A stretch of DNA of 64,000 bases, taken from the NCBI GenBank assembly GCA_002269645.1, contig NIVC01000034.1, positions 284,883 through 348,882 of the forward strand, written 5' to 3'. The notes under the pieces are model-generated. The model ran no database searches. It saw only the letters and a list, made by a program, of their open reading frames with translations, and was not told where the DNA came from. This document shows, piece by piece, positions 1 through 53,277 of this stretch (the stretch's first letter is position 1; every line of letters starts with the position of its first letter). A program made the translations under genes and the position numbers. This stretch comes from Macrostomum lignano. Its lineage: Eukaryota.

Positions 1-810
1 CACTGAACTATCACTAATCTTGGAATTCATTCAGTGACTGAACTACCAGTGAACTTGGGATTCATTCAGTGACCTTGAGATTCATTCAGTGACTGAACTA
101 TCAGTGACCTTGAGACTCATTCAGTGACTGAGCTATCAGTGACCTTGAGATTCATTCAGTGACCTTGGGATTCATTCAGTGACTGAGCTATCAGTGACCT
201 TGAGATTTATTCAGTGACTGAGCTATCAGTGACATTGGGATTCATTCAGTGACTGAGCTATCAGTGACCTTGAGATTCATTCAGTGACTGAGCTATCAGT
301 GACCTTGGGATTCATTCAGTGACTGAACTAACATTAGTGATCTTGGGATTCATTCAGTGACTGAACTAACATCAGTGACCTTGAGATTCATTCAGTCACT
401 GAACTATCACTAATCTTGGAATTCATTCAGTGACTGAACTACCAGTGAACTTGGGATTCATTCAGTGACTGAACCATCAGTGACCTAGGGATTGATTCAG
501 TGACTGAACTATCAGTGACCTTGAGATTTATTCAGTGACTGAGCTATCAGTGACCTTGAGATTCATTCAGTGACTGAGCTATCAGTGACCTTGGGATTCA
601 TTCAGTGACTGAGCTATCAGTGACCTTGAGATTCATTCAGTGACCTTGGGATTCATTCAGTGACTGAGCTATCAGTGACCTTGAGATTTATTCAGTGACT
701 GAGCTATCAGTGACCTTGGGATTCATTCAGTGACTGAGCTATCAGTGACCTTGGGATTCATTCAGTGACTGAACTAACATCAGTGACCTTGGGATTCATT
801 CAGTGACTGA
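1..810. repeat. Intronic minisatellite, ~35-bp unit CAGTGACTGAGCTATCAGTGACCTTGAGATTCATT
   Basis: More than 20 tandem units with deletion variants; core TCAGT-G-ACTGA inverted repeat. Confidence 0.95.
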
Positions 811-835
811 ACAAAAAAGAAGCAAACCAACAAAC

Positions 836-1277
836 CTCAGGCTCCAGCTGTCTGTCTGTCTCGGCGCTATCCAGGCGATCCAACAGCTGCAAGAAGTCTA
901 AGTACAGCTGGCCTCCTAGCTGCCAGTCCTGCCTGTCGCCAGCCAGCTGAGCAACTGGTGCCAGGTGACGCCGGACTCGACTGAGCTGTCCGGCTACCAG
1001 CCAGCGCGGAGCCAGACTGTTCAGGAGGATGTCGTGCGCCGGTCGCCACTGACCGGCTGCCAGCCAGTGTCGGGCCTCTCGACGCTGCCAATCGGCTAGG
1101 TCGACAGGTAATTGAGCGCCGTCGCTAATGTTGAAGCAGCGAGTTCGACAGGCCAAGGCCCAGGCTGAGTGAAGCCAGTGGCGCGGCAGGCCGAGTTGGT
1201 TGGTGAGGAAATTTTGCAGAGCCGGGTCGCGAACTGTGCCCAGGTGACGGCTCAGACAGGCGCTGACTGCTCGGGTT
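836..1277 (-). CDS. NUP96: Nup96 exon (C-terminal helical region)
   Basis: Acceptor ctgcag at 1283-1278, donor GT at 835-834. Translates RTRAVSACLSRHL...W..AHDILLNSLAPRWL...WQLGGQLYLDFL. Confidence 0.9.
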
Positions 1278-4200
1278 CTGCAGGGTTGGGATTTTGGGAA
1301 TTACCAGATTTTTTCCCCAGCAATTAGATCTAATAGACTGATTCGAATTAAAAGTTTTTTGAATCCTTAAGTTGGAATCTGAATCCTCAATTAGGGATCT
1401 GAATCCTCAATTAGGGATCTGAATCCTCAATTAGGGATCTGAATCCTTAATTATGGATCTGAGTCCTCAATTAGGGATCTAAATCCTCAATTGGGGATCT
1501 GAGTCCTCAATTAGGGATCTGAATCCTCAATTAGGGATCTGAATCCTCAATTAGGGATCTAAATCCTCAATTAGGGATCTGAATCCTCAATTGGGGATCT
1601 GAATCCTCAATTAGGGATCTGAATTCTCAATTAGGGATCTAAATCCTCAATTGGGGATCTGAATCTTCAATTAGGGATCTGAATCCTCAATTAGGGATCT
1701 GAATCCTCAATTAGGGATCTGAATCCTCAACTAGGGACTCAATTGGGGATCTGAATCCTCAATTAGGGATCTGAATCCTCAATTAGGGATCTGAATCCTC
1801 AACTAGGGACTCAATTGGGGATCTGAATCCTCAATTACGAATCTAAATCCTCAATTAGGGATCTGAATCCTCAATTAGGGATCTGAATCCTCAATTAGGG
1901 ACTCAATTGGGGATCTGAGTCCTCTCAATTAGGGATCTGAATCCTCAATTAGGGATCTCAATCCTCAATTAAGGATCTGAGTCCTCAATTAGGGATCTGA
2001 ATCATCAACTAGGGATCTGAGTCCTCAATTAGGGATCTAAATCCTCAATTATGGATCTAAATCCTCAATTAGGGATCTAAATCCTCAATTAGGGATCTGA
2101 ATCCTCAATTAGGGATCTGAATCCTCAATTAGGGATCTGAATCGTCAATTAGGGATCTAAATCCTCAATTAGGGACTTAATTGGGGATCTGAATCCTTAA
2201 TTAGGGATCTGAATCCTCAATTAGGGATCTAAATCCTCAATTGGGGATCTGAATTCTCAACTAGAGATATAAAAATCCTGTATTGAAACCCACAGAGCAG
2301 TCTCTCACCTGGCTAAATCGTCGTCAATATGAAGCAGCACAAACAGGGCCCAGTCCCACAGTCCCTGGGACTCCAGTTTAGCCGCATAGCCGCAGTGCAG
2401 CGCCTGAGTGGCCGAGTCGGTGAGGTGGCTGTAGCCAATCGCGCGCAGACTGCGCCACAGATGCCAGGCGGGCCCAAAGTCGATGGGATCTGGACCGTAG
2501 CCGCGCGGATCCAACAGCCTAGCCAGCCGGTGGCTTCGTTTGCAGTGCAGGCGCACCAAATGATAGGCGGTATCCCAGCGTGCGCCGCCGTGCTCCGGAT
2601 TTAACGGCGGCGGCGGTGCGCCGGGCTCCGGCGATTTGAAGGCCGATTTGTAGGCGCGCAATGCCGGGCCAAGACCGTCGCCGTAGGGTACGGAGAACCA
2701 CAGGTAGAGAGTGAATGCTCGGGTCCAGTCCATGCCCTCTGGATTGGTTGTTTTGCATCAGAGGAGGTGAACTTTCGATACATATCGGCATATTGTAATT
2801 CATACGACAATACTTAGAAATTTTGTCTAGGATTTTCTTAGAAACGCATATTTTTTAAACTACTAATTAATAAATTACCAATTTTTCGATACATATCACC
2901 AAATCCAAGAGTACACACATGATAATACCTGACATTTTCCTAGGAGTCTAGGACTTGTTTCTAACAGCCTTATGCAAAATTCAACTTTACTTTCGATACA
3001 TATCGGCAAATCCAAGAGTACATTTAATAATAACTTTAAATCTCTAGAAGTCTAGTACAAAATTAAACTGTATTTTCTATACATATCGGTAGACTGAAAT
3101 GATAGTAGAACAGTCAGACACTTTTATGAAACTTATATTGGCTTTTGATACATATCTGATGCTAACCTGATGACATAAACTTAAAAATCAAAGTTGATTA
3201 TATAAATACAATTTTCGATACATATCGGTAATTAATACTAATAGATATACCTGTCCCACTGACATCGCCAGCCAGGAGTCGATAGAGTCGCCAAACAGCA
3301 GGCGGTATAAAATCTTTTGCTCCAGTCTGCTGCCAACAGGCCACCTGCTGGGCCACCAGGTCGCGTACAGATTCCGAGTGCGGCTGGCCCAACAGCAGCG
3401 CCAGTCGGTAGTGGCGCCGTTTTAGCGCTAAAGCGCACGCCTCAGTGAACTGACCGGCGCTTAACAAGCGAAACACAGCCACGGCGCAATCGCCCTCACT
3501 GTCGGGATCTTCAACAGTCTGTTGCTGTTGCTGCTGCTGCTGCTGAAGTTCGGCAACAACTGGCCTTCGCTGAACCCATTCTGTGAAAGCCTCTTTCCGA
3601 GGCAACTGAGTCGCTAAGAATTCGTCCTGCGGCAGATGCTGCTGCTGCTCACCACCAGCTGCATCAGAAGACGCAACCGTCGAGGATTTCAACGGAGCCC
3701 AGAGCGCTCGAGTGAGGCTGAGCAGGCGGGACAGGACACTGTCAGGCTGGGACTCCAGCTCGGCCAGGTACTGGGTCAGGGGTTCGAGTCCCGGCTGTGG
3801 AGACCATCTAGGGCATTGAAGAAGACTCTGCTGGCTGCCTCGGTCGGACACGGAGGTGTCGAGAGCAGCATTGAGCAGATTCTCTTCGTGTACGCTGGCC
3901 TCGCGACTCGACTCGGGAGCGAACACGCTGGTCAAGTGAATCTGCAAATTAATTTCAATATGCATTAACAGACACTTAAATTCTAACAATACTACTTATT
4001 AATAAATCGCATTCAGTTGAGTTTTTTTAAATTTTCGCAAAAATTAGAAACTCCGATATGTATCGAAAATAAATATAATCAACAACGCAAATCTTACAGA
4101 CGTGACAAAATATGCCAAGTATTATAGTTAAACAACTATAGTCACGATACTACTAAACTTCAATTCTGAGGAAAACATGTAGCGAAAAATACAAAATTCC

Positions 4201-4892
4201 AGTCAAAAAGAAAAAAATTGGCAGTAAATAATTTCGGAAAAATTGTTGACTCACTAGTTTCTGAGATGTGATCCATTCCGTTGTAGCTTCAAAACCCCGA
4301 TATGTATCGAAAACAAATATACATAAAAACACTAATTCAACGAATCTCGAAACCCTGATTGTAAGCAATGCCATTGATACTACTTTTGTACTTAGCATAT
4401 GAATTAGTACTCGTACGAAAATATAGAACAAATCCGATATGTATCGACAGAACAACTATAGTAGTAACAAATTAACCAACTCTGGTCTTGATGACATTTC
4501 AACCGAATTACACTTAAATATACAAAACTGCTAATAATACTACTTATCTACTCTTATACGCACTGATACAAAAAAGATTTTTATGAAAAAAACTTTTCAA
4601 AAAAGGAGGAAATCCCCGATATGTATCGAAAGATACAAAACTCTAACTAAATGAAACCAAAATTTTTATGTTTAATGTTTTCTTCCTTTCTACACATTAG
4701 TGTTTACTGAACCCGATATGTATCGAAAAACTATTATAACAATAAAAGTTTAATCAGTTTTACCGAATTACACTTAATTACACAAAAACGGCTAAAACGC
4801 TAATAATACTACTTATCTATTTTTTCGCGCCGATATAAAGCATAATTTAGATACAAAAAGCTATTGAAAAACGAATGCCAATATGTATCGAA

Positions 4893-4954
<62 letters not shown>

Positions 4955-7900
4955 ATACCAACCCTGGGTCCATCGATAGCTAGCAGTTCTCCGGACGGTC
5001 CCCAAGAGACGCGGCGAGACCTGCTACGCCAGAAGGCGACATCGGCCAGACTAAAATCGGCCGCGCATTGTCGCAAGTCGCCACCGCCGCCACCGTAGCC
5101 GGCAAAGCTGAGCTTCACAGATTCGGGAAACCTCAGCCGAGCAGCTGGCCTAGCCGGCATCGAGGACGGCACCGGAGACTCTGGGGCGAAGGCGAATTCC
5201 ATTGGTTTCACTCGCAATGGCGATTGGGTTGGCAGGCCTGGACCAAGATGTTGCTGCTGCTGCTGCTGCTGGCCAGTACGACGCAGCTTTGATGGTGATG
5301 GAGAGGTCGATAGCAGGCCAGTCGGTGAGGCTAAGAACGACCGACGAGAGTCCACGTAAGACAGTTGCTGTTGGGAATACATTTATCTGTCTGCGGCTGC
5401 AAGTCATGAGGAGCAGGTCATGAATTGCTGGGAAAAACTTTAATAAACCGTTATACATTACTAACTTGTCAGGTCTAATAAATCTGACTTGTCAGATCCA
5501 TTAAATCTGACTTGTCAGGTCTATTAAATCTGACTGTCAGGTCTATTAAATCTTACTTGTCAGGCCTATTAAATCTGACTTGTCAGGTCTATAAGTCTGA
5601 CTTGTCAGGTCTATTAAATCTGACTTGTCAGGTGTATTAACTCTGACTTGTCAGGTCTATTAAATCTGACTTGTCAGGTGTATTAACTCTGACTTGTCAG
5701 GTCTATTAAATCTGACTTGTCAGGTGTATTAACTCTGACTTGTCAGGTCTATTAAATCTGACTTGTCAGGTCTATTAAATCTGACTTGTCAGGTCTATTA
5801 AATCTGACTTGTCAGGTGTATTAAATCTGACTTGTCAGGTGTATTAAATCTGACTTGTCAGGTCTATTAAATCTGACTTGTCAGGTGTATTAAATCTGAC
5901 TTGTCAGGTGTATTAAATCTGACTTGTCATGTGTATTAAATCTGACTTGTCAGGTCTATTAACTTTGACTTGTCAGGTCTATTAACTCTGACTTGTCAGG
6001 TCTATTAACTTTGACTTGTCAGGTCTATTAAATCTGACTTGTCAGGTCTATTAACTTTGACTTGTCAGGTCTATTAACTCTGACTTGTCAGGTCTATTAA
6101 CTCTGACTTGTCAGGTCTATTAAATCTGCCTTGTCAGGTCTACCAGTATTAACTTTGACTTGTCAGGTCTATTAAATCTGACTGTCAGGTGTATTAAACC
6201 TGACCTCAAAAAGCAAATTAGAAAACCAAAAAACACAGTCGAATTAAAACAACACCAATAATACACGATCGTATTCAGTTATAATATATTAATGGTTAAT
6301 AATTAAGCTAAAAAGCATGATCAATAAAAGTATTGCAAAAAAATAAAACACATAACTTACTACCATTAATAAATATAAACATACATGCGCAACAGTCGGC
6401 CGAGTCGGCCGATCCGGCCGACCGATTTGGCGGCCAACCAAGGTAAGTCGCAAAAATGCCCACCCGAAAGAATCATACGTAGTACTAATTAGATGACGAG
6501 GCATTTAGCCCTTATAAGACAGTCATAGTTACTCCTGCTGTTTACCCAAAATTGCGTTAATTTTGCTGAAGGGTTTCTTTCACAGGTAAGTCGCATTTTT
6601 TGTTAAAACTAAGTCGCACGGCCGACCAAATTTTGAAGGTTGCGCATGTATGAATATAAATAAGCTAACACAACATTCAAAGCAGCAACAATAATAGCAG
6701 GCAAAATAAGCAAACAGATTTCAAGCAATTTAAGCCAACATAATTATTAAATAATGGGTAAAAAAGCAAACGGTTAATACAGACCATTATTTCTGGCATT
6801 TCTAGCACCGATGACAATATTGCAGTCTTTTAACAGTTAAATAAAAGTCATGGAATGCGGCCAGCTGCATTTACCAGATTGAATTTATATTTTTTTAATT
6901 ATAAACATGTAGACTAGCAACTGTCAACGCAAATTAAATAGATTATAAATTGAGCTAAGTTTAATACCTACATGCAGTTGAAGCAAATTAAACCAATATC
7001 AAGTGATAAACGCAGTCATTATATAAATACTAAAAGAGAAAATGGACGCAAAAGAATGTGCGCTTGGGCTAATTGCAGAGCAAAACTGGGCACTACTGGA
7101 CGGCTTAAAACTTCAAGCGACAGTCGGTGAGATCGATTTGAGAGTACAGAGTAGAGGCAGAGAAAAGAGAGGAAGAATAGATATTAGAATTAACTATTCG
7201 CGTTAGGAGAAGAGATGCGGCAGAAGAGAGGATGAGATTTGTAGATAAGATTAGGAGGATCAGATTTGCGAATAGGAGAGGGCGAGATTTATGAATACAT
7301 GTAGGTGAGATCTGTGGATAGGAGAGTGAGATTTGTAGATAGGAGGGTGAGATTTGTGGATAGGAGGGTGAGATTTGTGGATAGGAAGGTGAGATTTGTA
7401 GATAGGAGGGTGAGATTTGTGGATAGGAGGGTGAGATTTGTGGATAGGAAGGTGAGATTTGAGGATAGGAGGGTGAGAGTTGTGGATAGGAGATGGTGAG
7501 ACTTTTGGATAGGAGGGTGAGATTTGTGGATAGGAGAGTGAGATTTGTAGATAGGAGGGTGAGATTTGTGGATAGGAGGGTGAGATTTGTGGATAGGAAG
7601 GTGAGATTTGAGGATAGGAGGGTGAGAGTTGTGGATAGGAGATGGTGAGACTTTTGGATAGGAGGGTGAGATTTGTGGATGTGAGGGTGAGATTTGTGAA
7701 TAGGAGAGGGTGAGACTTGTGGATAGATCTTGAGACTCAAGACAGAGATAAGATCGAGATAAAAAATGATAAAAATAACGATTTTCAATCAATCAATCGT
7801 TGTTAATGGGTGCTAAAAGCCAGTCCAGTTATCTCAAGAGAGTATCTGAGTCGGATTTTCGCCAAGAGCCATGCTGCCCTTGAAGTCTAGCACATCGGAG

Positions 7901-8401
7901 AGACGACACCAACTGCCTTTGCTGTTGCTGCTGTTGCAGTCTCGGCGGAGTCAGAGTGGCGGATTTCTCGCCGCCAAGAATATTACAATTATTTGGCGTC
8001 ATAGTGGGCCGACGGCAAGTCACGGCCACTCTAGAAGTGGAGGCTGTACGCCACATCAACCTCTGGCACTGGCTGCCAGTGTTCAAAGACTCACAGGATG
8101 ATTGATTAATTTGATCCTCGCAATTAAATAATTCAGTTTTCATGCTTTGCAAAGTGGCAGCGCTCAGGCCAAGTTGTTTTACTAAAGCAACTGAAGCTGG
8201 GTCGGATGAAGCTGATGAAGGCGGTTCCGGCTGAGGTGAATGCTGCTGAGGAGGCGGTGGCGGTGGCATGGGCTGCCCAATGGGGTAGAGGTGACCATTT
8301 TGCAGAACGCAAGGCAACACGAGGCCATTAGGAAGTGGATAAAAATAGTAGCGATAATGCGTGTTACTACCCGGATGTGACTGCTGCTGACAATGCTGCA
8401 T
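836..8401 (-). CDS. NUP96: Nup96 part of the Nup98-Nup96 locus (multi-exon, continues beyond the left window edge)
   Basis: Exons 8401-~8095 (3' end uncertain), 5367-4963, 3941-3251, 2738-2309, 1277-836. GT/AG sites and phases agree (0-0, 0-1, 1-2, 2-0). Nup96 motifs: LGLSAATLQSMKTELF, RSRRVSWGP, FTEACALAL..RLALLLGQ, GMDWTRAFTLYLWF, GLWDWALFVLLHI, NFLTNQLGLPRHWLH. Confidence 0.88.
1372..2265. repeat. Intronic minisatellite, 20-bp unit GAATCCTCAATTAGGGATCT
   Basis: About 40 tandem units; imperfect palindrome centred on AATT. Confidence 0.95.
2309..2738 (-). CDS. NUP96: Nup96 exon
   Basis: Acceptor ccAG 2740-2739, donor GTGAGA at 2308. Translates DWTRAFTLYLWF, DTAYHLVRL, LESQGLWDWALFVLLHI. 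Confidence 0.92.
2770..4895. repeat. Two degenerate arrays of the motif CCGATATGTATCGAA in opposite orientation
   Basis: Six copies reading TTCGATACATATCGG at ~2774-3228 and six reading CCGATATGTATCGAA at ~4053-4893. Confidence 0.85.
3251..3941 (-). CDS. NUP96: Nup96 exon
   Basis: Acceptor ttgcAG 3943-3942, donor GT 3250. Translates RKEAFTEWV, AVFRLLSAGQFTEACALA, LALLLGQ, QVACWQQ. Confidence 0.9.
4898..4950. repeat. (AT)n microsatellite
   Basis: About 26 AT units directly after the splice donor at 4962. Confidence 0.95.
4963..5367 (-). CDS. NUP96: Nup96 exon containing the RS.RV.WGP motif
   Basis: Acceptor ttcccaacAG 5369-5368, donor GTTGGT 4962. Translates DVAFWRSRSRRVSWGPSGELL. Confidence 0.8.
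5462..6205. repeat. Intronic minisatellite, 23-bp unit CTGACTTGTCAGGTCTATTAAAT
   Basis: About 32 units; core CTGAC-TT-GTCAG hairpin. Confidence 0.95.
6380..6652. mobile_element. MITE, possibly Tc1/mariner-like
   Basis: 14-bp inverted repeats CATACATGCGCAAC (6380-6393) and GTTGCGCATGTATG (6639-6652). Can be read as TA flanks plus a CATGCGCAAC TIR. Non-coding interior. Confidence 0.65.
7230..7730. repeat. Intronic minisatellite, 21-bp unit GATAGGAGGGTGAGATTTGTG
   Basis: About 20 tandem units; source of the spurious ORFs at 7105-7792. Confidence 0.92.
7829..8401 (-). CDS. NUP96: Nup96 N-terminal exon/ORF (3' boundary uncertain)
   Basis: 190-aa ORF containing LVKQLGLSAATLQSMKTELF, similar to the LGINPHVLQIMKASLL segment that follows the cleavage site in vertebrate Nup96. 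The strongest donor is GTGAGT at 8094. Confidence 0.7.
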   Translation of the reverse strand: MQHCQQQSHPGSNTHYRYYFYPLPNGLVLPCVLQNGHLYPIGQPMPPPPPPQQHSPQPEPPSSASSDPASVALVKQLGLSAATLQSMKTELFNCEDQINQSSCESLNTGSQCQRLMWRTASTSRVAVTCRRPTMTPNNCNILGGEKSATLTPPRLQQQQQQRQLVSSLRCARLQGQHGSWRKSDSDTLLR

Positions 8402-8471
8402 GCCGGATGTCTTTTAGTGCTGAAATATTTACGATTTTTTACGGTAAAGGATGTCAGGTAAAATGGGATTA

Positions 8472-10157
8472 CTTACTTACTTACTTACTACTGACGGGGG
8501 GCGCAGGCGCCGCGAATAGGCCGCGAGGCCCCTATCGCAACCCCAAGGTAAAAGAGCACAAGGATTAGCCTTGGGGGTGCGCCCAGTCCCCGCCAGTAGT
8601 CGGCAGGTCCGCAGTGGAGGCATCGGCGACCCTCATCCGGCCGGAGTCCCGGACGAAGGCGCGGAGGTCTCGGATATTGTCCGCGGTGGTCAGCTCGTCC
8701 ATCCGCTGGGGGTGGCCGAGGTATTTGTGCCGCGCCTTGTTGAAGTAAGGGCAGAAGGTGACGTGATGCTCCGCGGTCTCCTCTCCTATGCCACAGAAGG
8801 GACAGGTGGGAGGGCAACCGGTTTGCAACGATATATGTCTCTGGAAGAATCCGTGGCCGGTTAGGACCATGCACATCTCCCTGAGGTCGGTTTTGTTAAG
8901 CGAAATCAGATAATCAGAGACTTTCCTGTTCAGGTTAGGCATGGCAGAGCGGCTCTGCCTGTACTCGGTGCAGCTGTTCCAGTGGAGCTGGTGCTGCTGA
9001 TGGAGCCACCTGTTGATATGGCGGGTGACTTGCGACCTGGGGGTGGGTAGCCTCATCAGACGGTGGTTGCCGTCTGGGTTGCTGCCCTCCTTGGCGAGAG
9101 AGTCCGCGAGCTCGTTGCCCAGGATGTTGCTGTGACCAGGTGTCCAGATAATTCTAATCCTGTTAAGGACTGAGAGAGATTGCACACTGCGGTGGCATTG
9201 AGATACTGTAGCAGCGGAGATATTCTCAGTGGTTAAGGCCTTAATAGCAGCTTGGCTATCAGTGTAGAAATTAATGTCAAAATTATTAATGTTCGCCTGA
9301 AACAGTTGCTGGGCACACTGCTCAATGGCGCAAATTTCAGCTTGGAAAACTGAGGTGTTCTCACCGAGGTGCAGACTTTCCTGGAGAAGCATCTTACCCT
9401 CGTGGAAAATGGCAATACCCGCTCCAGCGCGGCCGTTGAACAGCGAGCCGTCGGTGAAGCAGTGAATGCCCTGGCTGCGCCGGTTCACACCGACATCCAG
9501 CGGAATGTTGTCTCGGCCAGGGATGGCGGTCTTGAAGCCCCTCCTGATGTTGAGGGCGGGAGGTCGACTATCCACATTGCCCAGGTCCATGTGGATGTTG
9601 TTAAGGTCGCGGCGGACAAAGTCCATATGCGGGATTAATGTTTTCATTGGCATAAAGCCAGAGGGCGCGTTATTTAACGTTTTATCTCTGATAAGCCGGG
9701 AGGCAGACTTCATAGCCTCCGCCCTAATAAATAGGTGAAGCGGAGGTAGGTTAAGGATAGTGTTCAGCCCCTCGTAAGGGGTGGACGGGTACGCACCTGT
9801 GATGGCACGGCAAATGCTGCCCTGAAGCTGGTACAGCCGCTGACGGGCGGCCTTCTGCTCCAGCACGCTAGTCCAGATGAGACTCGCGTATGTGATACTG
9901 GGCCGGATGATGCCGGTATAAATCCAACGGACCGTTCTAGGCGAGAGGCCCCAAGTCGGCCCGATGGCTCTGCGCAGCTGGGCAAAGCAGCGTTTTGCCC
10001 GACCGATGACGTTATCAAGGTGCTTCGTCCAGCGCAGGTCATGCGTTAGCGTCACACCGAGGTATTTGACCTCCTTCTTGAAGGGGATGTTTCTGCCATA
10101 GACAGTGAGGTTTTTCATCTCCCACTTACGGCGCTTGGTGAAAACGACAGCGACAGT
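8472..10157 (-). mobile_element. 5'-truncated non-LTR retrotransposon (R1/LOA-like) with RT C-terminus, RNase H and CCHC finger
   Basis: Open 517-aa frame 8565-10118: [30 protein letters not shown], RNase H motifs FTDGS / QAEICAI / YTDSQAA / [19 protein letters not shown], and CPFC..ETAEH..C. (TAAG)n tail at ~8472-8489. Exact 13-bp TSD TAAAATGGGATTA at 8459-8471 and 10158-10170. Confidence 0.93.
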
Positions 10158-10815
10158 TAAAATGGGATTAACTAGTTAAGGATCTGAGGTACAATGGGAT
10201 TAACTAGTTAAGTATCTGAGGTACAATGGGATTAACTAGTTAAGGATCTGGGGTACAATGGGATTAACTAGTTAAGGATCTGAGGTACAATGGGATTAAC
10301 TAGTTAAGGATCTCGGGTACAATGGGATTAACTACTCAAGGATCTGAGGTACAATGGGATTAACTAGTTAAGGATCTCGGTCGGGTACAATGGGATTAAC
10401 TACTCAAGGATCTCAGGTACAATGGGATTAACTAGTTAAGGATTTCGGGTACAATGGGATTAACTAGTTAAGGATCTCAGGTACAATGGGATTAACTAGT
10501 TAAGGATCTCAGGTACAATGGGATTAACTAGTTAAGGATTTCGGGTACAATGGGATTAACTAGTTAAGGATCTCAGGTACAATGGGATTAACTAGTTAAG
10601 GATCTCAGGTACAATGGGATTAACTAGTTAAGGATTTCGGGTACAATGGGATTAACTAGTTAAGGATCTCAGGCACAATGGGATTAACTAGTTAAGGATC
10701 TCAGGTACAATGGGATTAACTAGTTAAGGATTTCGGGTACAATGGGATTAACTAGTTAAGGATCTGAGGTACAATGGGATTAACTAGTTAAGCATCTCGG
10801 GTACAATGGGATTAA
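10158..10815. repeat. Minisatellite, 32-bp unit GGTACAATGGGATTAACTAGTTAAGGATCTCA
   Basis: About 20 units; contains the perfect 12-bp palindrome TTAACTAGTTAA. Confidence 0.95.
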
Positions 10816-11199
10816 CCAGATTAATAGAAGCAAGGAGTGAAAAGCAAACTCATTATAGAATCGGGAGGACACAAAAGCCTGTACTTGTATTTAAAACAAA
10901 TAATACATTCGAGTCGGTTCTTGTAATTTATAAAATGAAACTTTTTGTCTTATGCAGTTTAGCAAATCAGAAAATACCAGCACTAGGAGACAGGTGACAT
11001 TGAAACCTTTCGAAATTAACAAAATAAAAAAGAATGTGATGACATAGGATTAAGTAAACATTAAACTTAAAATTTGTTACTTTTTAAACATAGACAAAAG
11101 GGTATTTTAACGACAACTTTTACAGTACACATGAACTCATGCCAAAAATTTGGGGGGGGGGGATAAATAAACTATGAAAATTATAACAAAAAGAATATT

Positions 11200-11205
11200 T
11201 TTATT
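11200..11205 (-). promoter_or_regulatory. Candidate polyadenylation signal AATAAA for the Nup98 transcript
   Basis: tttatt on the + strand at 11200-11205, about 350 nt after the TGA at 11558, in AT-rich sequence. Confidence 0.4.
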
Positions 11206-11296
11206 TCATTTAACTGAATAGGCGGGTCTATAATATTTTAAGATAATTATATCAGGATAAAAGCATGCCTATTAAACCTTCATTTTGAAATATTAT

Positions 11297-11425
11297 CTTC
11301 TGTTAGACAGTCAACTCTGAACACAGTGTCAACACCTGTTAGACAGTCAACTCTGAACACAGTGTCAACACCTGTTAGACAGTCAACTCTGAACACAGTG
11401 TCAACACCTGTTAGACAGTCAACTC
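11297..11425. repeat. Short tandem repeat, 36-bp unit, ~3.5 copies
   Basis: CTGTTAGACAGTCAACTCTGAACACAGTGTCAACAC repeated. Confidence 0.9.
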
Positions 11426-11557
11426 TGAACACACCTGTCTAACAGTCGATCCGACACGAAGAATCAAGCCCCTAAGAATGGCATAAACTATACAATATGT
11501 TTAGAAACTGTAAGGCCAGAAATCCCGCAGTAAAACTGAAATCTCAAATCGCAAATC

Positions 11558-12271
11558 TCAGATCGCGCTGCTACTATCAGGCAGAGGCTGTCTGTGACTC
11601 TCGGTCGGTGCAGCAGTCAGAGCGGGACTGTTCTCAGCCCCGCCAGATGCATTGGAGGCATTCAACGATTTAGACTTAGCAGCAGTGCCAACTGCAGTGG
11701 CTCCGATAGCTTTAGCCGAGGCCGAAGCAGCAATAGCCGAAGCAGACGCAGAGTCAAGAGACGCTCTCAAAGCAGACGAGGGCAGCGTGAGCTTCTTCCA
11801 ATTGGATTTTCTAACAAAGAACAGACTGTCACTGCCAGACGGGTTGCTACTAGAAGAGAAACTAGCCCCCGCAGCATCCGAGGAAGCCTGTTCGAATCCT
11901 TCGAATAGTTGCTTCCTATTGGCCACTTGAAGCGGTCGGACAGTTGTTGACGAGCCCGATGAGCAGCTGTTAGACTTGGGAGACACTCCGATGCTGAAAT
12001 TGTAGTTAGCCTGACTGTTGCCAAGGGCGCGTTGGGCAGCCACTGGGAGCAGAAGATGTTGCTGCGAACTGACACCACCGCTAGACTGTTGAAGATTAAA
12101 TGTTTGACGAGATGCCGACGGCTGAGACAGGCTGAAATAGTTCAGAGGTGCACTCGAAGCCGAGGAAAATGGGCCGATGCCTGATCCCGCGGCTGAACCA
12201 GACGAAGAGGTCGACATTTGGCGAGTCAGGTGAGCGGTGCCGTATGGTAGGGTCTGGACTAAGTCGAGTAC
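11558..12271 (-). CDS. NUP98: Nup98 post-FG exon ending in TGA
   Basis: Acceptor ccgcAG 12273-12272. Translates VLDLVQTLPYG...RKQLFEGFE...RKSNWKKLTL...SSAI*. No consensus donor before the stop. Confidence 0.85.
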   Translation of the reverse strand, partial: VLDLVQTLPYGTAHLTRQMSTSSSGSAAGSGIGPFSSASSAPLNYFSLSQPSASRQTFNLQQSSGGVSSQQHLLLPVAAQRALGNSQANYNFSIGVSPKSNSCSSGSSTTVRPLQVANRKQLFEGFEQASSDAAGASFSSSSNPSGSDSLFFVRKSNWKKLTLPSSALRASLDSASASAIAASASAKAIGATAVGTAAKSKSLNASNASGGAENSPALTAAPTESHRQPLPDSSSAI

Positions 12272-15200
12272 CTGCGGTCAAGTTTTAGAGACGAGGGAGA
12301 TGGTTAATTTAGATTATAATTGTGCTGAAACAACTGTTGAAAGATTGGGAAATGTGCCAGCAGCTAAGCATCTGATCTTGTTTCTCTTTTCCCAACAGAA
12401 ACGTGGACATATGGGAGATTAGGTGTCAGTAAAAGTGATACCTGAGGATCAGGGAAGGTGTCAGTAACTGTGATATCTGAGGATCAGGGAAGGTGTCAGT
12501 AACTGTGATACCTGAGGATCAGGGAAGGTGTCAGTAACTGTGATACCTGAGGATCAGGGAAGGTGTCAGTAACTGTGATACCTGAGGATCAGGGAAGGTG
12601 TCAGTAACTGTGATATCTGAGGATCAGGGAAGGTGCCAGTAACTGTGATACCTGAGGATCAGGGAAGATGTCAGTAACTGTGATATCTGAGGATCAGGGA
12701 AGGTGCCAGTAACTGTGATACCTGAGGATCAGGGAAGGTGTCAGTAACTGTGATATCTGAGGATCAGGGAAGGTGTCAGTAACTGTGATACCTGAGGATC
12801 AGGGAAGGTGTCAGTAACTGTGATACCTGAGGATCAGGGAAGGTGTCAGTAACTGTGATACCTGAGGATCAGGGAAGGTGTCAGTAACTGTGATACCTGA
12901 GGATCAGGGAAGGTGTCAGTAACTGTGATACCTGAGGATCAGGGAAGGTGTCAGTAACTGTGATACCTGAGGATCAGGGAATGTGTCGTAACTGTGATAC
13001 CTGAGGATCAGGGAAGGTGTCAGTAACTGTGATACCTGAGGATCAGGGAAGGTGTCAGTAACTGTGATACCTGAGGATCAGGGAAGGTGTCAGTAACTGT
13101 GATATCAGAGGATCAGTTAGTATTTAAGCCAGTCACCCTCACCTGCTGTTGCACCCTAGCCTGCTGCAACAGTGCCTCATCATGATTAGCGCTTAATCCG
13201 ATAGACTGCGGAGCAGCGGCTTGAGCTGTCTGTCCAGGCAGAGCATAGGACTGCTGATGCAACTGGAACGGCTGATTAGGCATCATCAGTGACGAAGCCT
13301 GTTGCTGACCAACTCCAGTTTGCAGGCCTGACTGAAACGGAGTCTGACCGAGCATCAAACCGCCCGTGGTGCCGCCGCCAAGAGCGGATGGTTGACCAGC
13401 TGAAGGCAAGCTGAAACCAAACGAGCCGCCAACTGAGGCTGCTGGAGCGCCGGCGGTGGCGCCGAAGGACAAGCCGGCGCTTGGTGTTGGCTGGGTTGCA
13501 CCGAACAGCGGCTTCGCCTGAATTTTGAAATTCAGGTTAGAGAAATTATGTATAATCTTGGCGTTAGTCTATTGATATTAGTAGGAGAATAACCAGAATA
13601 ACTAGATGGGCCACTCAGCACATTTGCGTGTAAGCTACTATCAGTTCAGTAGTAAGCTAAACTGAAGCATTTTAATGTACTTTAAATTAAAGACAAGGCC
13701 CAGCCCATTTATTAGCTCTTACCCCCCCCCCAAGCTTGAACCCACAAACTCCACACAGAGCCTCTAACCCAATTTTTATTACCTTCCTCGGTTGTTACAG
13801 CCTAAAATCTGTCTTGTACATTTTTGTGGCTAATGTACATACATTACGGCTGAACCAATTAGCAAGCTTGTTTAGTTAGTCTAGTAGCTGTGAGATAGGG
13901 TTAGAGTTTTGGTTAAGGTATAGCATTAGTAATAGGTTAAGCATAGGATTTAGATTTGTATTAGGATTAAGAAGTTTAGAATAAGGGTTTAGGTTAGATT
14001 TAGGATAAGGGTTTAGGTTAGGTTTAGGATAAGGCTTTAGGTTAGGTTTAGGATAAGGCTTTAGGTTAGGTTTAGGATAAGGCTTTAGGTTAGGTTTAGG
14101 ATAAGGCTTTAGGTTAGGTTTAGGATAGGGCTTTAGGTTAGGTTTAGGATAAGGCTTTAGGTTAGGTTTAGGATAAGGCTTTAGGTTAGGTTTAGGATAA
14201 GGCTTTAGGTAAGGTTTAGGATAGGGCTTTAGGTTAGGTTTAGGATAAGGCTTTAGGTTAGGTTTAGGATAGGGCTTTAGGTTAGGTTTAGGATAAGGCT
14301 TTAGGTTAGGTTTAGGATAAGGCTTTAGGTTAGGTTTAGGATAAGGCTTTAGGTTAGGTTTAGGATAAGGCTTTAGGTTAGGTTTAGGATAAGGCTTTAG
14401 GTTAATTTGTTAGGTTTAGGATAGGGCTGTAGGTTAGGTTGTTAGGTTTAGGATAGGTTTAGGGGGTTTGGTTAGGTTTAGGATAAGGGTTAGGTTTAGT
14501 TTAGGCCTTTGACAATAGAATGAATATAGAGGAACAACAATAAGAATGATAAACCGGAACCACAGAAGTGAGGCACTAATAGCATCGCACAATAGAAACT
14601 CACCGCGCCGGCTCCAAAGCCGCCCGTAGCGCCGAAAAATCCGCCGCCGGCGCTTGACACCACAGTTCCAGCCGGCGCCGATGTTGCCGCCGACGGGGCG
14701 CCAAAAAACGACGTAGCGGCGCCGCCTGTAGCTGGCGTCGACCCGACTGAAGCGCCAAATGCGAACGGTTTCGCCGCATTCGCCGCTCCAGCAGAGTTGC
14801 CACCGCCAAACAAGCCGCCGCCAGTGGCGCCGGCGCTAAATCCAAACGCCGATCCTGTCGCAGTGGCGCCAGGCGCCGCCGCAGTAGATGTCGATATTCC
14901 GGCGCCAAAAGCAAACGGGCTTGGCTTGGCGCCGGCGTTAGCACCGGCGCCGCCGAAAAGTCCACCCGTGGTGGCGCCAGACGCGGCTCCGGCGCTTCCG
15001 CCAAACAGAGAAGTGGCGCCAGGCGCGGCGGCGCCAGCAACCGAAGCAGGCTGGCTAGCGGGGGCGCCGAACATAAATCCGGTAGGTTTGACGCCGCCAG
15101 CCGTAGCCGCGCCGGCGCCAAACAGACCACCGGCGCCGGCTGTAGAAGTGGCGCCGCCAGTGGACGCGCCGAATCCAAATAGGCTGCTGCCAGTTCCGGC

Positions 15201-16940
15201 GCCGCTAGCGGCTACGCTGCCGAAGGTTGGCACGCCAGCCGTGGCGGCGCCAAATGGCTTAGCAGCCGTTGAAGTGGCGCCGGCGCCGCCAAAGAGGCCG
15301 CCGCCGCCAGTTGTAGCGCCAGCAGAGGCGCCAGCGCCAAACAGGCCGCCGCCAGTTGCCGGAGGGGCGCCAGCACCCGCGCCGGTGGAGGCTCCAGCGC
15401 CAAACATGCCAACGCCGGCGCTGGAGGCGCCAGACTGCGGCGCGCGCCGACCAGCTTGATAATCTTCAAGGCGCAGCTCCTCCAGACTACCGGCTTGATA
15501 CTCTTTCATGGCCGTGATCACCATGTGCTTGGTGTTCACTGTCTGCTGGGCACCGCCCTTGGCCTGCAAGGTTAGATGAGCGATTATTGATGCAATAATT
15601 GACTAGGATTAACTTCTGGCTGCATTTCAGTGATAAAAAGGCCTTTGTTTATTGTCATTTTCACCAAAATTGTAAATCATTGATACCGCATTCACGCTAA
15701 TTCTAAACTGCTTTCTCACTAATCTTAAACTGCATTCACACAAATCCTAAATCGAATTCACACCAATCCTAAACCGCATTCACACTAATATACAACTACA
15801 TTCACACTAATCCTCAACCGCATTCACACTAATCCTAAGTCACATTCACACCAATCCTAAATCGCATTCACACTAATCATACATAAACTGCTTTCTCACT
15901 AATCCTAAACTGCTTTCTCACTTATCCTAAACTGCATTCACACAAATCCTAAATCGCATTCACACCAATCCTAAACTGCTTTTTCACTAATCCTAAGTCA
16001 AATTCACACCAATCCTAAACCGCATTCACACTAATCCTAAACTGCATTCACACCAATCGTCAACCGCATCACACTAATCCTAAGTCACATTCACACCAAT
16101 CCTAAACCGCATTCACATTAATAATAAACTGCTTTCTTACCAATCCTAAACTGCATTTACACAAATCCTAAACTGCATTCACACAAATCCTAAATCGCAT
16201 TCACACCAATCCTAAACTGCTTTTTCACTAATCCTAAGTCATATTCACACCAATCCTAAAGCGCATTCACACTAATCCTAAACTGCATTCACACTAATCC
16301 TAAGTCACATTCACACTAATCCTCAACCGCATTCACACTAATCATAAATCACGTACACACTAATCATCAACCGCATTCACACTAATCCTAAACCGCATTC
16401 ACACTAATCCTAAATCACATACACACTAATCCTAAACCGCATTCACACTAATCCTAAACCACATTCACACTAATCAACAACAGCAGTCACACATTCACAA
16501 CAGAGCACAGTGAACGGCATATACCTGAGTGGAGCTCTCAGTCCCTATTGGCGGATTAAAGGCCGGCCTGTTACCAGCCGACATGCCGCCAAGACCGCCA
16601 ACTGTGGCGCCGCCGGCGGCGCCAAAACCACCAGAGGCGCCAAACAGGCCGGCGCCGCCACCGCCACCAGCAACTGTACCAGTTCCAACGCCGCCAAAGG
16701 CTGAACCAGTGGCAGCAGAAACACCAGCAGTTGGTTGCACACCCACACCAACTGTAGGCTGCTGCATCATGCCAAATGTACCAGTGGCGCCAGTAGGCCG
16801 AGCAGCGGCGCCAAAAAGGCCAGTGGTGCCAGTTCCAGTGGCGCCAGCCGAAGGGCTGCCAAAAAGGCCGCCCCCAGTGCCAGCGGCTGGGGTTCCGACT
16901 GTTGGAGTTGCAGGTTTGCCAAATGGATTGCTGCCGAACA
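11558..16940 (-). CDS. NUP98: Nup98 FG/GLFG-repeat nucleoporin with GLEBS motif; no autoproteolytic domain seen
   Basis: Exons 16940-16525, 15563-14604, 13517-13143, 12271-11558(TGA); all internal junctions are phase 0. GLFG repeats, GLEBS motif NTKHMVITAMKEYQAGSLEELRLEDY, QTLPYG, RKQLFEGF and FFVRKSNWKKLTL motifs. About 821 aa if the first A of ATG comes from an upstream exon. Confidence 0.93.
12420..13115. repeat. Intronic minisatellite, 35-bp unit AGGTGTCAGTAACTGTGATACCTGAGGATCAGGGA
   Basis: About 19 near-identical units; hairpin cores CAGT-A-ACTG and CCTGA-GGA-TCAGG. Confidence 0.95.
13143..13517 (-). CDS. NUP98: Nup98 late FG exon
   Basis: Acceptor aattcAG 13519-13518, donor GTGAGG 13142. 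Translates AKPLFGATQP...SFGFS...Q-rich. Confidence 0.85.
13960..14500. repeat. Intronic TTAGG-rich minisatellite, 24-bp unit TTAGGTTAGGTTTAGGATAAGGCT
   Basis: About 20 units; telomere-like pentamers but not a canonical telomere array. Confidence 0.92.
14604..15563 (-). CDS. NUP98: Nup98 GLEBS plus GLFG exon
   Basis: Acceptor cttgcAG 15565-15564, donor GTGAGT 14603. 960 nt, phase 0-0, contains the GLEBS (Rae1-binding) motif. Confidence 0.95.
15690..16480. repeat. Intronic minisatellite, 22-bp unit CACACTAATCCTAAACCGCATT
   Basis: About 35 degenerate units. Confidence 0.92.
16525..16940 (-). CDS. NUP98: Nup98 N-terminal FG exon
   Basis: Acceptor ttgtAG 16942-16941 followed by TG TTC GGC = (M)FGSNPFG. 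Donor GTATAT at 16524. Confidence 0.9.
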
Positions 16941-19266
16941 CTACAATTGGTTGTTTAGTTTTAGTTGTTTAAGTTAGTTTGCTTTGTCAGTGTGTTGCGT
17001 GAGCATACTACATAAGTCATGATTCATGAATATTTAGAAGTAAAAGTGAAATGAATACAGTGTGATACAATTCACAATGTATTCACCTATAGCTCAAGAA
17101 TAATTCCATTTACTAGATGATTGAACATGGAATATGAGAACCCTGATTCAAATGGATCATTAGTTGCAGAATATGAATCCAGTAGAGATACAAGCTATTA
17201 AAACCTACAGATTTTTTATTTTTTAAAGCAAAACCCTAAATTCCAATTAATAGAACTATCTTTGCATTGATTTTTTAATTTGAAGTCATGCTCAAACAAA
17301 AACTTGTTAACAGTTAGGGAAAAGGCTAACAAAGATAGGAGCAAATACATGTTAAATTAAGATTTGAGGCTTTTGCAACTTCTCCTCTCTTCAACCTTCT
17401 CATCTGTTTCCTATATTTATTTTCTCTCATCCCTCATACCTCCTCTCTCCTTTCCTTTCTCTTCTTTTTACATTCTTATCTCTCTTATCATCTCTTTCCA
17501 CTCTACTCTTTGATCTTATCTCTCCTCTCTAATCTTTCCTTTTATCTCTTATCTATTTTCTCCTCTCCTTCTTTCTCTTGTCTCCTTTTTCCTCTCTCTT
17601 CTCTTTTCTGATCTCATCTATTATCTTTCTCATGAGAGAGATGAATCTCTCTCCTCACCTAGCTTTTCTCTTTTCTTTTATCTTTTCTCCGATTGCATTG
17701 CTTACCTCTGTTTGCTTATCTCTAATTGATTCTTTTATCCCCTCTGCTTTGAAGTAAGAAAGTTTGCTTACATTTTTGCTAAAGATAAGAGGAGAAAAGA
17801 GGGCATTGAGGAAAAGGGTAGAGAGAAAAAGGGAGAAAGAAGGGAGGAGAAAAGAGGAGAGAAAAAAGGAGAGAAGAGAGGAGGAAAAAGGGAGAGAAAG
17901 AAAAGGGAAGGTTAGGAAGAGAGAGAGAAGAGAGTTAAAGAGACCAACCTAGAGAGAGAGAAGAGCCCTTCTAGGCCAGATAGAGGGGCTTCACAAGCTA
18001 GAGTTTGCCAACCCTTGCTTCAGAGTTTGAGAAATCAATGGGAAACTGTTGGGATAGGCTGTTGATTTCAAAGATCTTGTCTGTAATTGAAGGCTTCTAT
18101 TCTAGGTTTGCTCTCCTGCTATACTTGCATCTACTATCCTGATTGCCTCTGATTGCAACTTAGTCGCTCCTTTTATGACTTTACCTAATCATTTTGCAAT
18201 TCATCTAATTATTTTGCAACTTACCTAATCATTTTTGTGACTTAGTTGCTCTTTTTGCAACTTATCTAATCATTTGTACTGCTTAATTTGCTTTAGTTGC
18301 AACTTGTTTTTCTTTTGCTTTATTATTATATTTCCTTATATTGCACTTTTTTCTCTTTTTTCTTGCCTTTCTTTCTTTCTTTGGTCTTGGGATTTTTCAT
18401 TTTTGGTTAACTCAACTTTGCAACTTACCCTAGTTAATTACAATTTATAGTGGCTAGATCGGCCATGTCTGCCAGCAGTTGTGCATATATGGCAGAGAAA
18501 ATATTAACATTAGCTACTTGCTGTCTGATAGATACTTGCTATCTAGGAGTAGGAGATATTTGCTATTGTATCTAGAGGTTGGTGCTTACTATTAAGGGAT
18601 GCTTGCTCTCAAAGGAGAAGGGTATACTTGCTATATATATATTCTTTTTATCTAGGGATTCTTGCTATCTGCAATTAGAATTATAGGATACTTGCTATCT
18701 AAGGGATACTTGCTATCTAGATAATGCTTGCTATCTAAGAGATACTTGCTATCTAAGTAAATACTTGTTATCTAGATAGATGCTTATTATCTAGGTGGAT
18801 AATTGTTATCTAAAGAGATATTTGCTATTTATTTCTAAGAAATATCTCTTAGAAATAAAGAAATATTTCTAAGAGGATGCTAGCTATCTTAGGCCTTAAG
18901 TTAGAGACAATTTCTATTTAAGAAAGAGAATGTCTACTATCTTTATGAAGCGTTTTTATTCTTTTTCTATAATTTTACAAAAAGAGATTCATAGTAAATA
19001 TCTTTGTCCATGATAATTGTACTCAAATAAGATGATTTGTAAAACAAAAGAATTAGTTTTTTTTAAATGTGCTTTTTTAATTGTTTTCCATGGATAATTT
19101 TTGCTCCTTGGCCTTACTTATTATGTGCCCTGAAGGAAGCACTAGATTGCTAAGTTTAGAACTAAACTAGGCCTACTAAAATTGAAATGGATTTTTAAAA
19201 GAAAAGTAAAAAAAAACATTTTAATTAATATAATTTTAATCATAACATAAGCCAATAAGGCTAAGG

Positions 19267-52784: not shown

Positions 52785-53277
52785 TGAACAACCCCGAATT
52801 TCAACTTCACCGAGCAGGTGTGTTACATGGACTACCCGTCTGGATAAGATCATGGACACAGTTCAGCCTGGTGACCAGGTCTGTTTCCACCGAGGCCTGT
52901 TCATCCATCACGCGGTGTACGTTGGTCGCGGCCGAGCAATTCATCATCACCTGGGAGAGAGAAGTGGTGAAGTGATTGAAACCACATTGGAATACTTGGC
53001 CAAAAACGACCTAATGAAGGTGCTCAAAGTTGTCGACACTCCGTTCTCACCGGCCGAGATTATTGAACGAGCTCGCAGTCAGCTGGGGCCGTTGCCCTAT
53101 TCACTGCATGGCGGCAACTGCGAGCACTTCACTACGTGGGTTTATTACGGAGTTCGCCTGTCTAAGCAGATAATTAACCTGGGCCCTTATCAGCGCAGAC
53201 TGTTGCAGGTTGTAAAGCACACGACTCCGAAAGAAGCCGACTCAGACTCTCACCAGCAATCGCCGGTCACGAGGTGA
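52633..53277 (+). CDS. LRAT/PLAAT (HRASLS, NC-domain) phospholipase/acyltransferase-like protein
   Basis: PGD..FHRGLFIHHAVYVG.G.AIH, IIERARSQLG..PYSL..GNCEHF catalytic motifs in 52852-53277. Putative first exon 52633-52646 (ATG...AA|GTAAGT) and acceptor at 52690-52691 give a 600-nt CDS. Confidence 0.85.
52688..52783. repeat. (GACA)n microsatellite
   Basis: About 23 units with two interruptions. Confidence 0.95.

Follow-up and report, generated by a model that had tools for sequence, protein, structure and literature searches.

In the animals and fungi studied so far, the C-terminal domain of Nup98 has two functions: it cleaves the Nup98-Nup96 precursor, and it subsequently attaches Nup98, the main FG nucleoporin of the permeability barrier, to the scaffold of the nuclear pore. 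Can a gene of this family work without that domain? The question is raised by a locus of the flatworm Macrostomum lignano. The window analysed here, 64,000 nucleotides (nt) of scaffold NIVC01000034.1 in the Mlig_3_7 assembly (positions 284,883 to 348,882), carries a Nup98-Nup96 homologue on its minus strand. A first-pass annotation, made from the letters alone, had proposed that this precursor gene is split and that its Nup98 lacks the autoproteolytic domain (PF04096, peptidase S59). We found that this description holds in the window and in two further M. lignano loci. The loss of the domain from all three assembled copies is well supported as a real and derived change, unusual for an animal.

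The two halves of the gene and the interval between them

The spliced Nup96 part of the window served as query in an exhaustive HMMER search, in which relatives of more than 50% identity were collapsed into clusters. The search returned a 99% identical match, PAA53029.1 (BOX15_Mlig024537g1, Macrostomum lignano, 738 amino acids, aa), with PAA93066.1 (739 aa) and PAA60594.1 (737 aa) as its cluster mates. The loci compared below are L001 (NIVC01003149.1), L003 (NIVC01002134.1) and L002, which is 100% identical to the window; contigs were taken with 10-kb flanks. The best match outside M. lignano was P0006 (39% identity), encoded on the ENA contig ERZ25070786:ctg130276l (L004).

Exon-like open reading frames (ORFs) with canonical GT-AG borders place the gene in window positions 1-17000. 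Its parts, in the order of the minus strand, are the following.

16525..16940, minus: Nup98 exon E1, with GLFG/FG repeats; starts directly after the acceptor ttgtag, first codon split
14604..15563, minus: Nup98 exon E2, with GLEBS and FG repeats; Pfam PF21240 at 5.3e-17; tblastn match to human aa 175-464, E 3e-31
13143..13517, minus: Nup98 exon E3, donor CAG/GTGAGG
12421..13116, unstranded: 35-bp minisatellite in intron 3, a repeat array of 19.9 copies
11558..12271, minus: Nup98 exon E4, linker with the FFVRKSNWKKLTLP motif; terminal exon, TGA at 11560-11558
11300..11433, unstranded: 36-bp minisatellite, 3.7 copies, each unit with a donor-like CAG/GTGTTG
10825..11299, unstranded: unique AT-rich spacer of 475 nt, 29% GC, no ORFs; 95-98.5% identity across the three loci
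10154..10824, unstranded: 32-bp minisatellite, a repeat array of 20.8 copies
10157-8472, minus (8459..10170 with its duplications): 5'-truncated long interspersed nuclear element (LINE) with an RNase H domain and a (TAAG)n tail
8420..8425, minus: TTTCAG acceptor, 18 nt before the ATG at 8401; identical in the three loci
7829..8401, minus: E5, an ORF of 190 aa with the Nup96 N-terminal linker motif LGLSAATLQSMK at 8173-8126
GT at 8094-8093, minus: the sole good donor within E5, CCT/GTGAGT, 6.8 bits, phase 1; conserved in all loci
4963..5382, minus: Nup96 exon E6, from the annotated ATG at 5382; RRVSWGPSG motif
3251..3941, minus: Nup96 exon E7, PF12110 at 2.3e-15
2309..2738, minus: Nup96 exon E8, PF12110 at 1.6e-34
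836..1277, minus: Nup96 exon E9, PF12110 match; window position 1 cuts the gene ~78 codons short of its end

The spliced E1-E4 product of 821 aa carries the Rae1/Gle2-binding GLEBS motif (PF21240, E 9.8e-17). GLFG/FG repeats are numerous in E1-E3 by direct reading, and PF13634 matches weakly (2.6e-4, below the cut-off). On the spliced Nup96 protein the helical domain PF12110 is matched with an E value of 7.4e-67 over profile positions 2-294 of 295, and the match runs through E7, E8 and E9 in three different frames. Human NUP98-96 is collinear with the window exons by tblastn, with a query whose confirmed stretch is the autoproteolytic domain (165 aa, 100% identical to PDB 7f60_C). Judged by these matches, the window gene is the M. 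lignano orthologue of the animal Nup98-Nup96 precursor gene. The downstream Nup96 exons had been called intact, and they are: their GT-AG sites are canonical and the E6-E9 splice model reproduces the deposited Nup96 protein.

The Nup98 half ends within E4. This exon (12271-11558) encodes SDSLFFVRKSNWKKLTLPSSALRASLDS, which includes FFVRKSNWKKLTLPSSALRASLDS, and closes with PLPDSSSAI and the TGA at 11560-11558, at the same stop position in all three loci; the frame thus passes the KKL motif before it stops, as had been proposed. The accompanying claim that no consensus donor precedes the stop was upheld by a weight-matrix scan, in which the best site upstream of the TGA reached at most 1.9 bits, compared with 3.5-11.2 bits for the gene's seven real donors. 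No single ORF spans Nup98, the domain and Nup96 at any of the three loci. Since the conserved stop breaks the frame and no donor lies upstream of it, a single precursor cannot be made. An AATAAA (11205-11200, minus strand) follows the stop by 353 nt, where it had been placed at about 350 nt. The minus strand from 11560 to 8400 has no other AATAAA or ATTAAA, and L003 has an AATAAA at the corresponding site.

Donor-like sites are present past the stop: CAG/GTGTGT at 11434 (9.4 bits) and CAG/GTGTTG (4.7 bits) in each 36-bp unit. These could act as splice sites of a 3' untranslated region.

The interval between E4 and E5 measures ~3.2 kb (3157 nt) and is non-coding. Its unique sequence consists of 124 nt, 475 nt and 57 nt, about 656 nt in total. 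The two minisatellites reported in it are present; the figure of about 650 nt of very AT-rich sequence stands as the total of unique sequence, the 29% GC block itself being 475 nt long. An exact 13-bp target-site duplication, TAATCCCATTTTA, brackets the LINE (10170-10158 and 8471-8459). The element is found only in the window copy, and both L001 and L003 show the uninterrupted empty target site. Because the sister loci have this intact empty site, the LINE removed no coding sequence, in agreement with the first-pass annotation, which had argued against an insertion-linked deletion.

Beyond the interval, E5 (8401-7829) already carries the post-cleavage motif, as had been noted: LGLSAATLQSMKTELF, at 8173-8126, aligned with human Nup96 LGINPHVLQIMKASLL and with L004 GVPPSTLQLMKAAVL. 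The start and stop positions of E5 are identical in all three loci. E5 and E6 each have a motif, LGLSAATLQSMK and RRVSWGPSG respectively, that aligns with the human and L004 sequences; LQxMK and (V/M)SWG(P/A) are conserved Nup96 N-terminal motifs, the latter presumed to be the blade inserted into Sec13. With its LQxMK motif conserved from flatworm to human, E5 is by sequence the detached N-terminal linker of Nup96.

E5 has been deposited as a hypothetical or 'uncharacterized protein' (PAA53030.1 / PAA60595.1), and an exact look-up of the window's E5 returned no record.

At the other end of the gene, E1 has no in-frame ATG (minus strand, window 16925-17000), and its first codon (xTG TTC GGC...) is split. 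The spliced leader of M. lignano, 35 nt long, ends in ATG and was considered as the start of E1; joined at the E1 acceptor it is out of frame, and this candidate was rejected. The true start of Nup98 is probably a tiny upstream exon; none was located.

Nearly all introns of the gene hold different minisatellites with units of 20-36 bp (700-800, 1360-2270, 5500-6290, 7252-7726, 12421-13116, 13990-14480 and 15700-16500). The intron after E6 (~4000-4960) has a (TA)n run that starts at the E6 donor and dispersed copies of a ~60-bp repeat (ttcgatacatatcgg...).

The autoproteolytic domain at three loci and in a relative

We looked for the domain in the window, L001 and L003, and the statement of its absence refers to these loci rather than to the whole organism. 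PF04096 had no match at E<=1 when the three minus-strand frames of positions 1-13500 were scanned with Pfam, and none in the spliced Nup98 product. A custom hidden Markov model (HMM) was built from 86 autoproteolytic domains, on which true domains score a median of 197 bits; run unfiltered (--max) against the window, L001 and L003 in six-frame translation, it returned a best E value of 18. By tblastn, the human domain found only chance matches in the whole window on both strands (best E=0.16), as did the L004 domain (best E=4.2), whereas the pieces flanking the domain in L004 do find E4 and E6. The HF/S cleavage site was not found at the locus, and neither was the Nup96 N-terminus that arises by cutting after HF and whose SKYG-type strand binds back to the Nup98 domain. 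E5 starts from an ATG of its own, and its initial 75 residues have no significant similarity to the domain or to its cleavage site. Thus, the S59 domain is confirmed to be absent from the window, L001 and L003, and the earlier statement that the interval holds no motifs of the domain agrees with the Pfam, HMM and tblastn results alike.

The three loci share one layout: E3, the 35-bp array, E4, the stop, the 36-bp array, the 475-nt AT-rich block, the 32-bp array, a stretch of ~45 nt, E5, an intron and E6. The stretch before E5 is ~45 nt in L001 and L003 and 57 nt in the window, where it includes the 13-bp duplication. When this shared layout was compared, the loci differed solely in the presence of the LINE and in the copy numbers of two arrays. 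The 36-bp array has 3.7 copies in the window, 16.7 in L003 (4171-4759) and 77.7 in L001 (3148-5916), and the 32-bp array 20.8, 38.1 and 17.1 copies, respectively. Exons are 98-99% identical between loci; non-coding blocks have diverged by 2-9% and contain many indels. The only coding indels, +3 in E5 and -3 in Nup96, are both in L001.

Pairwise Nei-Gojobori comparisons of the three copies gave ratios of nonsynonymous to synonymous differences (pN/pS) of 0.04-0.14 for Nup96 E6-E9, with pS of 1.6-3.8%, and of 0.22-0.46 for Nup98 E3-E4. For E5 the ratio was 0.20-0.61, from just 5-7 substitutions per pair, which alone is too thin to prove constraint. By these comparisons the copies are constrained genes under purifying selection, not a decaying homeolog.

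The gene of L004 (positions 6273-12316) shows what an undivided arrangement looks like. It is intron-poor and consists of three consecutive ORFs separated by intron-like gaps of ~260-280 nt: ORF 1 (823 aa) encodes the FG/GLEBS part; ORF 2 (237 aa) contains the full PF04096 domain (E 6.5e-44) with GSWVFEVRHFS and ends in GSWVFEVRHFSRYRF; and ORF 3 is a Nup96 of 771 aa that starts shortly before GVPPSTLQLMK. The linker motifs of L004 and M. lignano are strikingly close (ILQQARVQQQVLQLVSSIPYG against LLQQARVQQQVLDLVQTLPYG, and FFVRRTAWKELVIPASLRTSLDS against FFVRKSNWKKLTLPSSALRASLDS), the linker exon ends about equally far past the motif in both, and the exon breaks are equivalent. BLASTP puts the L004 Nup96 at ~33% identity to that of M. 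lignano and at a similar distance from echinoderm and mollusc proteins, and no synteny between L004 and the window was detectable outside the Nup gene. PF04096 was present in 118 of the 120 animal Nup98-96 proteins among the matches listed. Because L004 keeps the domain exon between homologous flanks, and because most of the listed animals have PF04096, the loss of the domain is derived in M. lignano. On the comparison of the loci, it is older than the separation of the three copies.

The two proteins without PF04096 among the 120 listed, P0258 and P0261, are short models (1276-1305 aa) of Pseudonaja textilis, and they probably reflect gaps in those gene models.

We therefore consider it likely that the exon of the S59 domain was deleted in the M. 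lignano lineage and that a split Nup98/Nup96 is the working state of these loci, since the loss precedes the divergence of the copies and all copies are under purifying selection. A wider claim is evenly balanced in our judgement: that M. lignano lacks the S59 domain genome-wide, that the truncated FG/GLEBS/linker protein is its only Nup98, with no tether to Nup96 or Nup88, and that Nup96 is made directly. M. lignano would then be the first known animal whose nuclear pores operate independently of the Nup98-Nup96 precursor mechanism, and the old N-terminal linker of Nup96 might persist as a separate protein of 190 aa.

It is on the wider claim that the best-surviving alternative bears. An anchored Nup98 might be supplied from elsewhere in the genome, by an older Nup98 or Nup98-96 paralogue or by a gene for the domain alone, the three loci having been subfunctionalised. 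This is compatible with what we describe at the loci, but the animal could then no longer be said to lack the domain. Several Nup98 paralogues coexist in fungi. Animals, on the other hand, normally have one Nup98-96 gene, and the 118 listed proteins with PF04096 carry it in one chain with Nup96; the sole M. lignano cluster among the best Nup96 matches is the domain-less one, and the nine next-best matches checked (P0006-P0014) are not from M. lignano. Furthermore, three copies fit the known neopolyploidy of the species and so may be the full set. On balance we regard such a gene as possible, though doubtful.

The other alternatives concern the loci themselves and fare much worse. Copies that lack a domain thought to be essential could be decaying pseudogenes, and the window copy has no annotated Nup98 or E5. 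All three copies, however, have intact ORFs and splice sites and in-frame indels; the pN/pS ratios are well below 1, and transcript-derived gene models exist. The objection that this might be one decaying homeolog among intact genes fails in the same way, as all three copies lack the domain and are under purifying selection, and we consider decay very improbable.

We judge no more favourably the possibility that E4 is cis-spliced to E5, which would yield an uncleaved Nup98-Nup96 fusion without the domain. The interval does resemble the gene's other minisatellite-filled introns, and an acceptor lies just upstream of E5. Against this, there is no in-frame donor before the TGA, the existing donors (at 11434 and in the minisatellite units) all come after the stop, the TTTCAG is followed by an in-frame TAA (8416-8414), and the annotation separates the units.

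A domain that is present and unrecognisable, because it is too diverged or is split over micro-exons, is more improbable still. MAFFT set the first ~50 residues of E5 (HPGSNTHYRYYFYPLP...LYPIGQPMPP) opposite HPAGIILTKVGYYTIP...VYLDDNQKPP, as though the E5 N-terminus were a shrunken relic of the domain. This candidate was rejected, since Smith-Waterman scores tested by shuffling gave p=0.14 against L004 and p=0.38 against human, and the HMM score was -3.5 bits. The unique DNA of the interval, at ~656 nt, 29-42% GC and rich in stops, also speaks against a hidden domain, and the unfiltered HMM and tblastx searches were empty.

Finally, that an assembly artefact collapsed a domain exon between the minisatellite arrays is exceedingly improbable even in an interval rich in tandem repeats and a genome known to be hard to assemble (PMC5730564), given that three separately assembled scaffolds show the same junctions, 475-nt spacer and exon ends while their arrays and LINE differ, that E4 has no donor and a stop conserved in all three, that the window contains no N bases, and that a transcript-based coding sequence ends at the same TGA. 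Because the three loci share junctions, stop and start, a misjoin at a single locus is strongly disfavoured.

Expression of the separated halves and comparison with known systems

How many proteins do the separated halves yield? The Mlig_3_7 annotation rests on RNA-seq assemblies divided at experimentally mapped spliced-leader (SL) and poly(A) sites, with ORFs predicted by TransDecoder (PMC5730564). For L001 it contains a product of 823 aa terminated by the E4 TGA, one of 191 aa that corresponds to E5, and a Nup96 of 738 aa from the ATG equivalent to 5382; for L003 it has E5 (190 aa) and Nup96 (737 aa) as separate entries. The E5 products (PAA53030.1, Mlig030665g1; PAA60595.1, Mlig033421g1) belong to units named apart from those of Nup96, the separate transcriptional-unit names being Mlig030665g1, Mlig033421g1, Mlig024537g1 and Mlig033736g1. 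Because these transcript-derived models agree, we place the end of Nup98 at the TGA and take Nup96 not to be continuous with Nup98. Of the proposal that two separately translated proteins are made, the separation thus stands; the number two is at odds with the annotation, which has three units (Nup98 of 823 aa, the 190/191-aa product, and Nup96 from the ATG at 5382).

The following course of events would account for these observations. The ancestral gene would have had the order still seen in L004, with an FG/GLEBS/linker exon followed by the domain exon and then by a Nup96 exon. After deletion of the domain exon, the linker exon, left without a donor, would run into the TGA ~62 codons past KKLTLP...SLDS and give a Nup98 of 821-823 aa without C-terminal anchor and protease. 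Nup96 could no longer be released from a precursor and would therefore need start codons of its own. It would be translated from the ATG at 8401 (the old N-terminal linker, 190 aa) and the ATG at 5382 (a core of 739 aa), each of which is closely preceded by an in-frame stop, a TAA at 8416-8414 in the first case and a TAA directly before the ATG in the second. The Nup98 message may be polyadenylated in the AT-rich block near 11200. The downstream unit or units may be capped by SL trans-splicing in an operon-like manner, for instance at the TTTCAG of 8425-8420; internal promoters for these units are an equally possible alternative.

The trans-splicing route fits what has been described for the species: 30% of its genes undergo trans-splicing and 15% are organised in operons, the acceptor motif is [T/C]TNCAG, and the operon threshold in use is 1 kb (PMC8629364). 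TTTCAG at 8425-8420 conforms to this motif. When the LINE and its duplication (1699 nt) and both arrays (671 and 134 nt) are subtracted from the 3157 nt, the repeat-adjusted spacer comes to ~650 nt and is thus below 1 kb. As in M. lignano SL operons, then, the units at this locus lie on the same strand with a fitting acceptor near a downstream ATG and a short spacer. Expression of this kind, by trans-splicing and in operon style, may help an essential fused gene to tolerate being split.

Several points weigh against the split as we have described it. The search for PF04096 covered the three loci. We infer the poly(A) site, the use of the SL and the transcript boundaries at this locus from sequence. 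On the window's own scaffold Nup96 alone is annotated, with no model for Nup98 or E5, and in L001 the sole AATAAA differs, lying 2.9 kb after the stop, within the same AT-rich block. Unlike those of SL operons, the units here are named separately and not as g1 and g2 of one unit. An in-frame splice from E5 to E6 is also plausible from the sequence, so that two proteins rather than three may be made. The donor in E5, used with the acceptor tcgttcttag (AG at 5332-5331), keeps the Nup96 frame and would leave ~57 residues between LQSMK and SPLRVKPMEF, compared with ~50 in L004. The GC content of the E5 tail, 53%, is exon-like. Against such a splice, the annotation places E5 and Nup96 in separate transcriptional units at two loci.

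How would a Nup98 of this kind be held in the pore? Work in vertebrate cells treats the domain as required for Nup98 localisation (PMC8421043). In M. lignano, Nup98 might instead be kept in place by its conserved linker motifs and GLEBS rather than by contact of the domain with Nup96 or Nup88. Given that these motifs are retained, and from what is generally known of Nup98 linker interactions, binding of Rae1 and of inner-ring scaffold proteins may persist in the truncated Nup98.

With the canonical metazoan precursor, as in human NUP98, the M. lignano locus shares the order of parts, the GLFG/FG repeats, GLEBS, the KKL linker, LQxMK, VSWGP and the Nup96 helical domain. It differs in having neither the ~150-aa S59 domain nor the HF/S site, a stop and a 3.2-kb interval in their place, and separately annotated genes. 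GLEBS, FG repeats and PF12110 place the proteins in the Nup98 and Nup96 families; the defining feature of an S59 self-processing precursor is missing. L004 resembles M. lignano in its linker motifs and in its 823-aa Nup98 part and, unlike it, keeps a full PF04096 exon.

In plants, NUP98A/B and NUP96 are separate genes and the fold of the Nup98 C-terminal domain is retained. Plants are thus like M. lignano in having separate genes and no precursor, and unlike it in that the M. lignano loci have lost the domain itself. Yeast Nup100 and Nup116, whose structures (3nf5, 2aiv) matched the human domain, are likewise Nup98-type FG nucleoporins without a Nup96 part, but they keep the domain fold as a pore anchor. 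The trypanosome counterpart of Nup98-96 has no autoproteolytic processing (PMC8421043), a precedent without self-cleavage from a very distant lineage. Our literature searches found neither an animal described as lacking the domain nor any work on flatworm or Macrostomum Nup98, and a search of supplementary files for NUP98 or Mlig gene ids found nothing.

A natural removal of the domain with both halves under selection would test how far linker motifs by themselves can anchor Nup98. It would also test whether precursor processing is needed to balance the amounts of Nup98 and Nup96. M. lignano is amenable to transgenesis (PMC5730564), which makes the question experimentally approachable.

Neighbouring features of the window

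Searches of the window against Rfam at gathering thresholds returned no match. Outside the Nup98-Nup96 gene, the window carries the following features.

21884-25000, plus: ARMC5-like armadillo-repeat gene
31096-33254, plus: protein kinase exon set
41645-45551, plus: Ty3/gypsy-type long terminal repeat (LTR) retrotransposon with a gag-like ORF (DUF7041)
52852-53277, plus: LRAT-family ORF, a single exon of 141 aa
60059-61356, plus: fibrinogen C-domain gene

An exact look-up of the LRAT-like ORF returned no record. The Ty3/gypsy-type element retains an open pol ORF of 880 aa with protease, reverse transcriptase, RNase H and integrase domains.

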